NCBI RefSeq assembly: GCF_001194135.2
Contig: NC_068981.1
Location: forward strand, 198,689,834-198,753,833
Reading direction: 5' to 3'
DNA length: 64,000 nucleotides
Source of the DNA: Octopus bimaculoides
Lineage: Eukaryota
Part shown: one piece after another, positions 51,701 to 57,700 of the stretch
Position numbering within the stretch: the first letter of the stretch is position 1
How the letters are laid out: every line of letters begins with the position of its first letter
The notes under the pieces: model-generated
The model's database searches: none
The model's input: only the letters and a program-made list of their open reading frames with translations
Told to the model about the DNA's origin: nothing
Program-made: the position numbers and the translations under genes

Positions 51701-54700
51701 AGCTTCGTCAGTTCTAACCTAGGGTTAAAGAACAACGTTTAGAGAATATTGATGTTTGATATGACTGTCTGCCCTGTTTTATTTAGCAAAGCTTTTAAGG
51801 ATAGAGAGAGAGAGAGAGAAAGAGAGAGAGTGTGTGTGTGTTTTACAGTGAAGGCTAATTTAATGACCACCTCCAAAGAGAGGCAGTTTGTATTGTCATT
51901 GTTCAAAGGACATATATCTTATCCCACCCCCCCAGTATGATGCAACAAGGGAGTATCTACGTAGTCACTTGACTTACTAGATATAATAACTAAATCTCTC
52001 ATTACATTCTGTGATCTTAAAAAGAGGAAGGATATATATTGTGTAATGTAGTCCAAGGTAGACCATGTCTGAAATGAATAATGGCAAAGTGATGGCTAGC
52101 ATGCTGTTAATCATAGACCTCTTCTGTAGAGGTTGACCTGGGGCTAAACTATAATTACTTTATCCTGGAGTAGTTCTTAACAATTGTTTCAGAACAAGGC
52201 CTACAGTTTCGAGGGGAGGGGTTAATCATCCCTTTAAATACCACCAACTCAAATACATGACTGTTTATTTTATAACCTCAAAAGGATGGAAGTTGAAGTG
52301 GAGAAGATTTGAACCCTGAATGCTAAGGACTGGAACAGATACGGTTTTAAGGATTCTGCTAATTCCTTACTTTTAAGAAATAGGGTTTTATTATAATGAG
52401 GATTCTATTGCTGTGGTCACAGTGTGATTGATCCTTGGCTATGGTACGGATGTATAGTCATTAAAATGATCCTAAAATCCATCTTTACAATTTCAATGGA
52501 TCAATATGTATCTCTGAATTCCTCAGCGCCAATCTCTGTCTTCATAACTTTAATCATTTCCATACTTCTACAACTAATTCAGAATCTCTTTTTTACAAAC
52601 CCCTAATTCTTTTGTCTTATTCTTTGTCCACATGACTTAATTGTGTGGTTAAGACATTTGCTTTGCAACCTCATGATTTCGAGTTCAATCTGGCTGCGCA
52701 GAACCTTGATTGAGGGTTTTCTACTCTAGAGTTGACAAAAACTTGTGGGGGGAAATCCACCTGACAAAATTGGAGGAACTTTTTCTGCTGTTGTGTGGTA
52801 AACTTTATCCATTTGCTTCTTTTAGCACAATCTACAGTGTTCCTTCATGCCTTTAGCAGGGACTGCTCTTACAAGCCTTCAAGTGGGGCCTCTAGTTTGA
52901 AAACATCTTCTGATCTTGGAAATCCTAGAAATGGTCATAGCATTGCACTTCCACATCTGATTACTGCATCTTTAAAAACCCATTTCCAATAAGTTACAAA
53001 CATTTCAAGATTTACCGGAACTGTTGAAATTATAGCAGCAAAATTCTTAACAAATGAAAGATTAAGAAATCTGAGGTTACCTTTAGCAATAATCATTTTT
53101 ATTTTACTCTTTTGTCCAATGTTTTGTTCTGTTTGATCTCCAATTAAAATGTTTGATCTCTTAAGATGAGATCACTTGTTTGAACATTTATAATCTTTAT
53201 GAGCAACAACTTGTCTCAGCCATTCACTCATTTAATCTCAACACTTAATTTCAATGCTTAATCCTTACAAATTCTTTACACCAGTTTTTAACAAAGAAAT
53301 GTTGGTACTTACAGAAATATTGAGCGATTTTGTATGGAATTTTGGGTTGGGGCCATTGACCATTAGTATTAGCGACTACATTTCTTTTCTGAAATAAAAA
53401 AACAAAAATTAATAAACGAAACAAAGATTGACAATGATTTGTCTTAGTGTGGACTGTGACAATGAAAAAGACTTGTCTTAGTGTGGACTGTGACAATGAA
53501 AAAGACTTGTCTTAGTGTGGACTGTGACAATGAAAAAGACTTGTCTTAGTGTGGACTGTGACAATGAAAAAGACTTGTCTTAGTGTGGACTGTGACANNN
53601 NNNNNNNNNNNNNNNNNNNNNNNNNNNNNNNNNNNNNNNNNNNNNNNNNNNNNNNNNNNNNNNNNNNNNNNNNNNNNNNNNNNNNNNNNNNNNNNNNNNN
53701 NNNNNNNNNNNNNNNNNNNNNNNNNNNNNNNNNNNNNNNNNNNNNNNNNNNNNNNNNNNNNNNNNNNNNNNNNNNNNNNNNNNNNNNNNNNNNNNNNNNN
53801 NNNNNNNNNNNNNNNNNNNNNNNNNNNNNNNNNNNNNNNNNNNNNNNNNNNNNNNNNNNNNNNNNNNNNNNNNNNNNNNNNNNNNNNNNNNNNNNNNNNN
53901 NNNNNNNNNNNNNNNNNNNNNNNNNNNNNNNNNNNNNNNNNNNNNNNNNNNNNNNNNNNNNNNNNNNNNNNNNNNNNNNNNNNNNNNNNNNNNNNNNNNN
54001 NNNNNNNNNNNNNNNNNNNNNNNNNNNNNNNNNNNNNNNNNNNNNNNNNNNNNNNNNNNNNNNNNNNNNNNNNNNNNNNNNNNNNNNNNNNNNNNNNNNN
54101 NNNNNNNNNNNNNNNNNNNNNNNNNNNNNNNNNNNNNNNNNNNNNNNNNNNNNNNNNNNNNNNNNNNNNNNNNNNNNNNNNNNNNNNNNNNNNNNNNNNN
54201 NNNNNNNNNNNNNNNNNNNNNNNNNNNNNNNNNNNNNNNNNNNNNNNNNNNNNNNNNNNNNNNNNNNNNNNNNNNNNNNNNNNNNNNNNNNNNNNNNNNN
54301 NNNNNNNNNNNNNNNNNNNNNNNNNNNNAGTGTGGACTGTGACAATGAAAAAGACTTGTCTTAGTGTGGACTGTGACAATGAAAAAGACTTGTCTTAGTG
54401 TGGACTGTGACAATGAAAAAGACTTGTCTTAGTGTGGACTGTGACAATGAAAAAGACTTGTCTTAGTGTGGGATGTATCAGTCACTCAGCTGGCGCCTTT
54501 GGAGTTTGTGTAATGGCTCTGATGTTGTAATGTGTTTTTGAAGGCAGATTGAAGACCTGTTGAGAGGAATTACAAGGTAGGGAGCCTCTATGTAGAGTCA
54601 CACAGCCTGCTAGAAATAGGAGCTAAATCTCTCTCATGCCACTCTCAAGTTCAGGAGAAATATTTTTAAAAAACTGAAGAAAAATGTTTTTGTGGAAAGT

Positions 54701-57700
54701 TAAAAATTGTGACACGAAAAATCTCTTTGAATATTTCTACTTACAAATCTGTTGGAATCTTGTTTATGGATATTGGCATCATATGTTCCTGTCAATAACA
54801 CATGTAGAAAAGATCTTTATACATTCATTATCAACAGATATTAAAGTCTGCAAAAAGGGAAGAATTGATATGCTGCAAACTCATGTGGGAACATAGACAC
54901 ATACATATGTATATGGGTACATACACACACACATAAATATATACACATATGTATAAACAAAAACGCATCTACACAAACATACAGATGTACTACACATACA
55001 TGTGTATGCAGGCATACACACGTGTACACGTATACATATATGTAGGCACATACACATGCATGCAAGTACACACGCACATGCTGGTATCCACTCACACAAA
55101 CTCACTTATCACAATGATGTAATGGTGGTTGTGGTGGTGGTGGTTGTGATGTTGGTGGCTCTGGTGATAGTGGTATTCAACATATCTCACCCATTTCTAT
55201 GAATCCTGGAATTACTTTATTTCTCCAAGAGTCTCAGATTGGCCAAACGTCAGTTCCAGCAGGCTGGAACACATTCTGTTTCTCCAGAAATATTGACTAT
55301 GAAGCTGAAATTTCATTTAAGCTTCTGGATGTTCAGGTTCCTCTCACTTGTTCACAAACATTTTATTTTCCTTGGATATATTTTCCTACACCATTAACGT
55401 CAACAGACTTCCACAACACAACCATATTCATATTTTGTGATCCCTAACAACAATATCAGGTCTGTTAGGATTTAATTTGGTTACAGTTTAGTTAGTCTTT
55501 CATTCCACCAGTATTCTTTTAATCCATTAATCTCAATATATTCCTCTTAATCCGTTGTAGTTTCTTTTCTTTCTTACTCCATCTCATTCTCTCGCAGTTG
55601 GCCCCAATGTAATTAAAGTCTCCTGTTTCTGCTTTTACATCATCTACATTTGGTGTCAGTCGATGCATCCTTCTTTGTTTGTATTTTTTAATTGTAGATA
55701 TTTGGAGACTCCTTACCCCAGGACTTTAAGGGGACAAGCCATGAAGGTGTAGGGACTCCCATCCTAGGCTTTTAGTATTGTTTCTTCCATTCTTGGTGCA
55801 TTCTTCTCTCTTTTATTCTTGTATTTGTTTCAGCAATTTGACTGTGGCCATGCTGGAGCACCGCCTTTAGTTGAGTAAATCAACCCCAGGACTTATTTTT
55901 TGTAAGTCTGCTACTTATTCTATTGGTTACTTTTGCTGAACCACTAAGTCATGGGGATGTAAACACACCATCATTGGTCGTCAAGTGATGTTGGAGGTAC
56001 AAACACACATATATATACATACATCATCATCATCATCATTGTTTAATGTCTGCTTTCCATGCTGGCATAGGTTGGACAATTTGACTGGGGACTGGCAAGC
56101 CACGAGGCCGCACCAGGCTCCAATCTGATCTGGCAGAGTTTCTACAACTGGATACCCTTCCTAACACCAACCACTCTGAGAGTGTAGTGGGTCCTTTTTA
56201 CATGCCATCAGCACAAGGGCCAGTCAGGCAACAATCACGCTCAAATGGTGCTTTTTACATACCACTGGCACAGGAGCCAGTCTGGCCACACTGGTAACGC
56301 TCACGCTCGAATGTTTTTTACATGCCACAGGCACGGGAGCCAATCAGCGGCCCTGGTAATGATCATGCTTGGATGGTGCTTTCAATGTTCCACTGGCACG
56401 AGTGCCAATCAAGTGGTAGTGGTACTGTCATTGGCCACGTCAGTGATTTTGATTTCACTTGCCTCAACAGGTCTTCACAAACAAAGTTTATTGTCCAGTG
56501 AATGAGGGGTACTCATAAGTGGGCTGGTTACACCCAGTAGCATAGGCCACGGGTTATGGTGTTTCTGTAGATGAACAGAGAAAACTGAGGTACTGCAGGG
56601 GATGGTTACATCTGCTTTACCTCTGATAACGTCATACTGTTTGATATGTTGTCCACAGAACCGAAGAAGATGCTACAAGACATTGACGATAGCAGCAAAT
56701 ATGTTGGTTTAAATATGGACTTTAATAACAATGAAGTCTCATAAGAGTTAGAGACCTCAACATCAGGAAAGAGGATGAACTCAATGAGTGGCAAAAGGCC
56801 AGAAACTAGAGACATAACACAGAATCGGTCTCGGCTGGATTACATTCAGTATGATGGTTGCCAACTTTGAGAAACAGAAGCTTATCATTAAAGCTGAAGA
56901 GTAAATGCTTTCAGACCTCACTCACAGATGGAAGACTTGGTCATTGAGTGACACACAGATATTAGTCACCACTCAATGCGAGAGTGACCATGGCATGATG
57001 GGAGTGGCAACAAAAAAAAGAAAAAAGGAAACAAACAGAACCCATTTGAATCCAAGAGAAGGGTCCAAGACCTCATTCAGCAAATAAAAATGGCAGAATC
57101 ACAAGTTAGTGAGGCATTTTGTAGGATAGGAGACGAGAGAGGGATTAACAAGTGAGAGAGGGGGATTAACAGGTGAGAGAGGGGGATTAACAGGTGACAA
57201 TGTTATGTCCATGAAACAATGTGTCCAAGATGACCAAAAGAAAGTTGGGAGACAACTTTGACCAAAGCTTTAAGGTCTACACTGGGGTCTGGTGGTCAAA
57301 GGTTGCTGGTGGAATGGAGGGAACACAAAGGAGGACCCGTCCAGCAGGAGCAACACAGACCTTGAAGATATTGATAGTTGTGTGCGTGTTGTGTGTGTTT
57401 GTGTGTGTGTGTGTTGTGTTGTGTTGTGTGTGTGTGTGTTGTGTGTGTTGTGTGTGTTATGTTTGTGTTGTGTGTGTTTGCATGTTGTGTGTTTGTCTTG
57501 TGTGTGTGTTTGTGTGTGTGTTGTGTTGTGTTGTGCGTGTGTTTCTGTATGTGTTGTGTTTGTGTTGTGTGTTGTGTGTTGTGTGTTTGTGCTGTGTGTA
57601 TGTTGTGTTGTTTGTGTTGTGTTGTTTGTGTTGTGTGTGTGTGTGTGTTGCATGTGCATGCTTCAACTTATTTAAAACTAACTGGTAATTAATCAATAAT

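Follow-up and report, generated by a model that had tools for sequence, protein, structure and literature searches.

How are the products of two neighboring astacin genes of one octopus kept latent, and by what kind of cleavage are they set free? The question is raised by a stretch of 64,000 nucleotides (nt) of Octopus bimaculoides DNA (the window, that is, the whole stretch analyzed), which carries two genes, A on the plus strand and B on the minus strand, arranged tail to tail, each of them encoding, according to Pfam, an astacin domain (PF01400), then one MAM domain (PF00629), and then the stop codon. By their sequences and by this one-MAM architecture, both genes are assigned to the family of the astacin-like squid metalloproteases (ALSM, or 'myosinases'). 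The one motif common to the prodomains of animal astacins is F-X-G-D-I; in the zymogens the Asp of this F-E-G-D-I loop resides on the zinc, where it displaces the catalytic water, and the prodomain threads the cleft backwards (PMC9848320, PMC9629494). An initial annotation of the window had proposed that paralog B lost this aspartate switch and acquired a furin site, such that two activation modes would exist in one gene pair. The best explanation overall, which we regard as evenly poised between right and wrong, is that B is an intact, maintained, and fast-evolving ALSM paralog whose product would be cut by a convertase and whose switch Asp may have become dispensable, with A as a classical zymogen.

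The Switch Position in the Two Prodomains

The part of the B prodomain in question is encoded by a 44-nt exon at 54745..54788 on the minus strand (gacag|GAACATATGATGCCAATATCCATAAACAAGATTCCAACAGATTT|gtaagt), which translates to (G)TYDANIHKQDSNRF and, with one G contributed by the preceding 33-nt exon, continues across the splice junction as G-T-Y-D-A-N-I-H-K-Q-D-S-N-R-F|K-R-N-V-V. Its counterpart in gene A, the 44-nt exon at 1369..1412 on the plus strand, encodes (G)MFQGDIDLEGRNIF, that is G-M-F-Q-G-D-I-D-L-E-G-R-N-I-F, and joins S-R-N-A-I at 4426. The exon translations and the junctions (KR|NVV in B, SR|NAI in A) had thus been read correctly in the initial annotation, with splice sites of the AG/GT type. 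Because A and B alike count 23 residues from YPE to the scissile bond, the switch Asp of A (codon GAT, 1383-1385) aligns without a gap with Asn46 of B (codon AAT, 54774-54772), which confirms the earlier pairing of FQGD with YDAN. The FxGD motif is hence present in gene A (F-Q-G-D-I) and absent from O. bimaculoides B (Y-D-A-N-I); the peptide of the gene A exon is identical in the O. sinensis ortholog of A (P0009). The Asp upstream in B (YD), considered earlier as a shifted switch, simply stands where F-[E/Q]-G-D has its acidic x residue. In the literature no report was found of Asp-switch mutants or of animal astacins without the switch, and a paper on the astacins of C. elegans does not treat their prodomains.

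An assembly gap of 731 N (53598-54328) lies entirely within the intron (53389..54744, minus strand) that joins the 44-nt exon to the next exon at 53313..53388, and since the gap is intronic, continuity of the frame across it is irrelevant. It is abutted by two arrays, 53439-53597 and 54329-54471, with 4.7 and 4.2 copies of a 34-nt period and 100% matches in Tandem Repeats Finder; the unit, TGTCACAGTCCACACTAAGACAAGTCTTTTTCAT on the minus strand, is present in at least nine perfect copies plus the gap (53439-54471) in O. bimaculoides. The orthologous introns of O. sinensis (594 nt) and O. vulgaris (591 nt) are gapless and hold ≈ 1.5 diverged copies of the unit and no exon. Across the gap, taken at its stated length, the repeat register of the two arrays is off by one base, which is expected when a gap size is an estimate, and the gap is an unresolved minisatellite expansion specific to O. 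bimaculoides. The initial annotation had itself named this gap as a place where the true, FxGD-containing 44-nt exon might reside. Such an exon was looked for and not found: apart from that of gene A, no FxGD-coding stretch occurs in any frame of the window, nor in the introns of B, and this all-frame scan, together with the exonless orthologous introns, rules out an exon concealed by the gap or within the B introns.

Asp or Asn: The Octopus Orthologs

The ortholog of B in O. sinensis (XP_036363637.1, P0002, 442 aa) is 89% identical to the O. bimaculoides protein and reads GTYDVDIHKQDSNRFKRNVV in this region, a sequence shared by the protein of O. vulgaris. In both species the motif codons are GTC GAT (Val-Asp), as opposed to GCC AAT (Ala-Asn) in O. 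bimaculoides, and the resulting Y-D-V-D-I has kept the Asp and lost the Gly. The claim that paralog B lost its aspartate switch is therefore not borne out; loss of the Asp is no property of the paralog, but confined to the O. bimaculoides sequence. Within the 44-nt exon, 5 of the 44 nucleotides differ from O. sinensis and O. vulgaris, three of them synonymous, the others being GCC/GTC and AAT/GAT, and the step from GAT to AAT amounts to a single G-to-A exchange at a CpG (gtC Gat). The switch column holds Asp in all 13 other sequences compared, i.e., the remaining cephalopod ALSMs and four outgroup astacin-MAM proteins, and all 13 conform to G-[LMFK]-F-[EQ]-G-D-[IM]. By parsimony, these sequences suggest that Asp is ancestral in B and that Asn was derived in the O. 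bimaculoides lineage, or in the one animal sequenced. On the same comparison, what unites the B lineage as a whole is the sequence R-F-K-R and a motif that has degenerated (F to Y, G to V/A), not the loss of the Asp.

The second half of this alternative deserves attention. The Asn might reflect an error of base calling or consensus, or a rare or heterozygous allele, with Asp being the normal residue of O. bimaculoides B; we consider this rather improbable. The codon comes from one assembly of a single animal, the chromosome-level sequence CM046601.1 (L001) showing the same sequence and the same gaps, and no independent O. bimaculoides sequence for it was found, JGI metagenome contigs scanned for either allele giving no match. 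It is furthermore a single G-to-A exchange in a CpG context, with another substitution beside it, at a site otherwise invariant in the family. Yet the flanking intron and exon differ by ≈ 12% from O. sinensis, such that a real substitution would be unremarkable; the codon lies in unique sequence, 270 nt away from the minisatellite; and the adjacent GCC/GTC difference speaks for a motif that is evolving in the B lineage anyway.

The Maturation Sites

Exon 3 of gene B (53313..53388, minus strand; tttcag|AAAAGAAATGTAGTC) contributes the K-R (53388-53383) that completes R-F-K-R, so that R54-F-K-R57|N58 spans the 54745/53388 junction, a canonical R-X-K-R at the maturation point of astacins, with NVVANTNGQWPQPKIPYKIAQYF as the predicted mature N-terminus. 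The bond R57|N58 aligns with R61|N62, the activation bond of meprin β (PDB 4gwm), where the phmmer alignment begins. In gene A, exon 3 (4426..4501, plus strand) reads SR|NAIGSAKKKWPSTTIPFKIHSYF, a monobasic activation site, and IFSR|N is found both in A and in its O. sinensis ortholog. The contrast between R-F-K-R in B and the monobasic IFSR in A, proposed initially, is real, and SNRFKRNVV recurs unchanged in the proteins and in the DNA of O. sinensis and O. vulgaris. As RFKR|N and IFSR|N are each conserved among orthologs, the pair differs stably in its activation site; of the proposed two activation modes this part holds, while the paralog-wide loss of the Asp does not. Activation of B by a convertase is plausible from its sequence.

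How special is such a site within the family? In the myosinase of Heterololigo bleekeri (Q8IU47) FEGDI occurs together with RFRR|S, while the Todarodes-type ALSMs read DPY|NAVG, with no basic residue at the maturation site. Three kinds of maturation site are thus encountered among cephalopod ALSMs (P0008, P0010, P0011, P0013), namely xSR|N/S, RFRR|S, and DPY|NA, a diversity which implies, as far as sequences can tell, different activating proteases within the family. Because Heterololigo has both FEGDI and RFRR, the furin-type site and the switch are uncoupled and appear to vary independently in the ALSMs; the RFKR of B is one more variant of the ALSM site rather than a unique gain. An ad hoc motif survey covered 77 evaluable astacins, ≈ 25 usable astacin+MAM matches coming from a representative search dominated by multi-MAM proteins. 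Among the 77, ≈ 62 have an Asp-containing motif and ≈ 10 predicted proteins have none. Several of these motif-less predictions display a multibasic site directly ahead of the mature N-terminus, i.e., RLRSRR|A (P0030), QRSRR|A (P0133), NRQKR|G (P0037), and IRKKR|N (P0188), the last following a propeptide of only seven residues. This suggests, on the basis of unverified gene models, that convertase-activated astacins lacking a recognizable switch already exist.

Integrity of Gene B

The reading frame of gene B is open across all exons in the window, with no frameshift or stop, and each of the nine exons within reach has a single counterpart of the same length in O. sinensis, the AG/GT sites being preserved. 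The ratio of nonsynonymous to synonymous substitution rates (dN/dS) between O. bimaculoides and O. sinensis, obtained by the Nei-Gojobori method, is 0.25 overall for B (dS 0.22) and 0.13 for A. In the prodomain it is 0.11 for B, A being without nonsynonymous change; in the catalytic domain (B exons 53388-30692, A exons 4426-11264) it amounts to 0.30 for B and 0.085 for A, and in the MAM domain to 0.21 and 0.20. At nonsynonymous sites the catalytic domain of B hence evolves ≈ 3.5 times faster than that of A, the MAM rates being alike. Only two of the 27 residues of the B prodomain differ between the two species, the adjacent A/V and N/D. There are 56 differences between the two B orthologs; the family consensus is matched by O. 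bimaculoides at six of these positions and by O. sinensis at two, which argues against a decay specific to O. bimaculoides, and D46N is the sole change in O. bimaculoides B at a family-invariant site. From these comparisons, gene B is judged to be intact and under purifying selection.

In the current RefSeq annotation, gene B is split into XP_014775331.2 (126 aa) and XP_052830588.1 (P0003, 290 aa) (L001 1-7467 and 10001-37171). The former covers exons 1-4 and runs past the exon-4 donor to terminate at a TGA (51380-51378); the latter begins at Met153 inside the zinc-motif exon and is 100% identical to the translation of gene B. The older model, XP_014775331.1 (P0044, 442 aa), which matches our gene B except for exon 1, and the O. 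sinensis ortholog indicate that B is one gene, as judged from the sequences. The split could alternatively mean that O. bimaculoides is losing gene B, the locus no longer giving one mRNA, with the D-to-N exchange as an early sign of decay under relaxed constraint, and the replacement of the 442-aa model by two shorter ones would fit this idea, as would the fact that no transcript-derived (Logan) protein of gene B is among the database matches. Nine exons without frameshifts, stops, or broken splice sites, a dN/dS of 0.25, and family-consensus residues that are better kept in O. bimaculoides B than in O. sinensis B are hardly what a dying gene would present, and automated models often split genes that contain 18-kb introns and assembly gaps; the idea is given little probability.

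Latency and Activation: A Proposed Mechanism

From F-[E/Q]-G-D-I, the prodomain motif of the B lineage has diverged to Y-D-[V/A]-[D/N]-I, and the maturation site is now R-F-K-R|N. It can be envisaged that a furin-like proprotein convertase cleaves pro-B at R-F-K-R in the course of secretion, the way astacins of the BMP1/tolloid type are processed, and that the zymogen would consequently be short-lived. During this brief period latency would be maintained mainly by the prodomain occupying the cleft in backward orientation, selection on the Asp-zinc bond would be weaker, and Asn, arisen by a CpG transition, could be tolerated in O. bimaculoides. Gene A, by comparison, would remain an Asp-switch zymogen, opened at its single Arg by a trypsin-like protease.

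Several points weigh against this scheme. The Asn stems from the one assembly and the one animal referred to above; the RefSeq split means that a full-length B transcript is not documented in O. bimaculoides, and the database matches contain no transcript-derived protein of B either; a consensus site is no proof that furin is used, given the coexistence of RFRR and FEGDI in Heterololigo; and structure prediction gives no support either way. AlphaFold2 was run on pro-B of O. bimaculoides and, as a control, on pro-A of O. sinensis with the same 21-sequence alignment, and the predicted local distance difference test (pLDDT) values of the prodomains, ≈ 30 for pro-B and 47-59 for pro-A, were too low to interpret.

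A different view of the prodomain starts from a micro-exon of 16 nt (62396..62411, minus strand; ttttcag|CAAGAATGTTACACAG|gtatgt), which has strong splice sites, matches P0044, and encodes QECYT plus 1 nt of the prodomain. Both O. sinensis (L002 5556-5571) and O. vulgaris (L004 17063) have conserved it, including the adjoining intron sequence. The micro-exon provides the B prodomain with Cys27, a residue conserved in the three species and absent from the other ALSM prodomains in the alignment; as the mature protein has eight Cys, with all family Cys present, Cys27 is presumably unpaired. Pro-B might then be fully latent, with Asn Oδ1, Asp44, or Cys27 ligating or shielding the zinc in place of the switch, and the RFKR bond might be cut extracellularly or in granules, leaving no difference in mode between A and B. 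The strong conservation of the B prodomain (two of 27 residues changed, dN/dS 0.11) argues that it is still functional, known zymogens are latent largely for steric reasons, and a Cys switch is realized in the bacterial astacin myroilysin, all of which would suit this possibility. On the other hand, the Asp is bidentate to the zinc in the solved zymogens, Asn being neutral and a far poorer ligand, the loop has lost its Gly as well, and nothing places Cys27 near the metal, the AlphaFold2 prodomain being unreliable. Full latency of pro-B is accordingly rated as unlikely, although by no means far-fetched.

In the most far-reaching reading, O. bimaculoides pro-B would be a natural animal astacin zymogen without an Asp switch, either weakly or constitutively latent and combined with immediate processing by a convertase, or with latency transferred to another ligand, e.g., Cys27, in convergence with myroilysin; from the sequences we deem this quite improbable. 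If the Asn is real and fixed, gene B represents a natural D-to-N switch mutant with an Asp ortholog in O. sinensis of 89% identity, and this pair could serve to separate the share of the Asp-zinc bond in astacin latency from the steric share. The variety of ALSM sites suggests in addition that the chemistry of activation changes more quickly in evolution than the core of the enzyme. In other respects the case is one of ordinary paralog divergence, in a gene already annotated and a family already known, rather than one of a novel mode of activation. Its practical benefit is the repair of the annotation, with B as one gene instead of two, and with a RefSeq protein of A that lacks an exon hidden in a gap.

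Exon Layout and Surroundings

Genes A and B have equal exon sizes (33/44/76/.../176/246/165) and equal intron phases. In gene B, exon 1 is placed beyond position 64000: no credible candidate was present in the window by ATG, hydrophobicity, and donor rules, and tblastn of the exon-1 peptides of RefSeq and O. sinensis against the window gave no gene B exon 1. According to the RefSeq model, the N-terminus of P0044 encoded by this outside exon is MIAVALCLMVCLCRCTLA, hydrophobic and putatively signal-like. The 33-nt prodomain exon of B (57773..57805, minus strand, AG/GT sites present) encodes (D)LDSQYPEVVT(G); it is 97% identical to O. sinensis L002 12223-12255 and homologous to the 33-nt exon of gene A at 587-619 on the plus strand, (D)FDPRYPEEVP(G). 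The N-terminal subdomain of the catalytic domain is carried by exon 4 (51382..51517, minus strand), the zinc site HELLHMLGLPHEQSRPDRD by exon 5 (48748..48923, minus strand), and the Met-turn SIMHY with the C-terminal subdomain by exon 6 (30692..30937, minus strand); the MAM exons 7-9 follow on the same strand at 28991-28827, 25400-25147, and 21784-21674, the last with the stop included. The spliced product gives Pfam E values of 6e-56 for Astacin (profile positions 1-188 of 189) and 1e-27 for MAM, the latter covering residues 244-403, with the stop nine residues beyond.

The catalytic and MAM exons of gene A are located at 8664-8839, 11019-11264, 11705-11869, 14981-15228, and 18045-18128 (stop included) on the plus strand. 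Its exon 4 is absent from the window sequence between 4501 and 8664; the exon has 136 nt in B, and its length in A is deduced by homology. Exon 4 of O. sinensis A encodes (S)KYDKEEFVAAMNHIEQMSSLNGKNCITFVNWTNEDAYMFFATGKG, and since its immediate downstream flank maps to 7541-7633, the missing exon belongs in the gap 7034-7540. As a result, the RefSeq protein XP_014775327.1 (387 aa) is without ≈ 45 residues of the catalytic domain.

Upstream of gene A exon 3, and ending ≈ 45 nt before it, lies a very long microsatellite with a trinucleotide unit of the TAC/ACT type (≈ 4012-4400, plus strand), whose frames read poly-Thr, poly-Leu, and poly-Tyr. Many copies of an interspersed repeat resembling a short interspersed nuclear element (SINE) are scattered in either orientation through the introns of A and B, e.g., at 5800-6100, 7670-7900, 9185-9500, 13310-13570, 23640-23850, 39320-39790, 48050-48400, 49500-49760, and 56030-56300, and dominate translated comparisons of A with B. 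The spacer from stop to stop (18128-21674) is ≈ 3.5 kb long in O. bimaculoides and ≈ 21 kb in O. sinensis, with the tail-to-tail order retained.

Comparison with Known Systems

The zinc consensus of the astacin family M12A, HExxHxxGxxH, E, xxRxDRD, is found in exon 5 of gene B, and its Met-turn YNSIMHY in exon 6 agrees with SxMHY, including the zinc-ligand Tyr. As for the two conserved disulfide pairs of the family, the invariant columns C106, C127, C146, and C256 are occupied in B by the Cys of GKDC, GCGS, VFCR, and YGC.

Among more distant astacins, the bacterial enzyme myroilysin (PDB 5gwd) has a prodomain without FxGD and employs a Cys as zinc ligand instead (PMC9848320, PMC9629494); for Cys27 of B, in contrast to this prodomain Cys, there is no evidence of such a role. 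The enzyme pLAST-MAM from Limulus polyphemus (PDB 8a28) is built from prodomain, catalytic domain, and MAM domain, as in the octopus genes, and resembles gene A in that it matures before N-A-I at one basic residue (K48|N49). In its F35-E-G-D-I39 loop, Asp38 is bidentate on the zinc, the position at which O. bimaculoides B has Asn, with Ala for the Gly. Meprins, a model for gene A, are Asp-switch zymogens opened by trypsin-like proteases. Meprin β (4gwm) is the best match to B among solved structures (E 5e-37), over the catalytic and MAM domains, but meprins carry in addition TRAF, EGF, and transmembrane parts, whereas the octopus genes stop after MAM. Meprin orthologs have been detected only in vertebrates (PMC9848320). 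The RefSeq name 'meprin A subunit beta-like' thus denotes similarity, not orthology.

For the proposed activation of gene B, a model is provided by the BMP1/tolloid-like proteinases, which are cut at R-X-[K/R]-R by furin-type convertases in the secretory pathway and keep the FxGD Asp. They differ from B in their long prodomains and their CUB/EGF tails, and they are devoid of MAM. The closest relatives remain the ALSMs: H. bleekeri Q8IU47 and Todarodes pacificus Q8IU45 are the nearest named ones, with 44-50% identity over the full length, and in a neighbor-joining tree B forms a long branch, roughly equally identical (44-50%) to all other cephalopod ALSMs. The cephalopod ALSM/myosinases I-III, a subfamily characterized biochemically by cleavage of myosin heavy chain, comprise a signal peptide, a short prodomain, the astacin domain, and one MAM domain, after which the protein ends. 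The layout of B is the same, with a putative signal peptide, and B shares with the ALSMs the prodomain core YPE(E)V..G and maturation before N/S-[AV]-[VI]. The difference lies in the switch region itself, which reads G-[LM]-F-[EQ]-G-D-I in the other ALSMs retrieved and G-T-Y-D-[VA]-[DN]-I in B.

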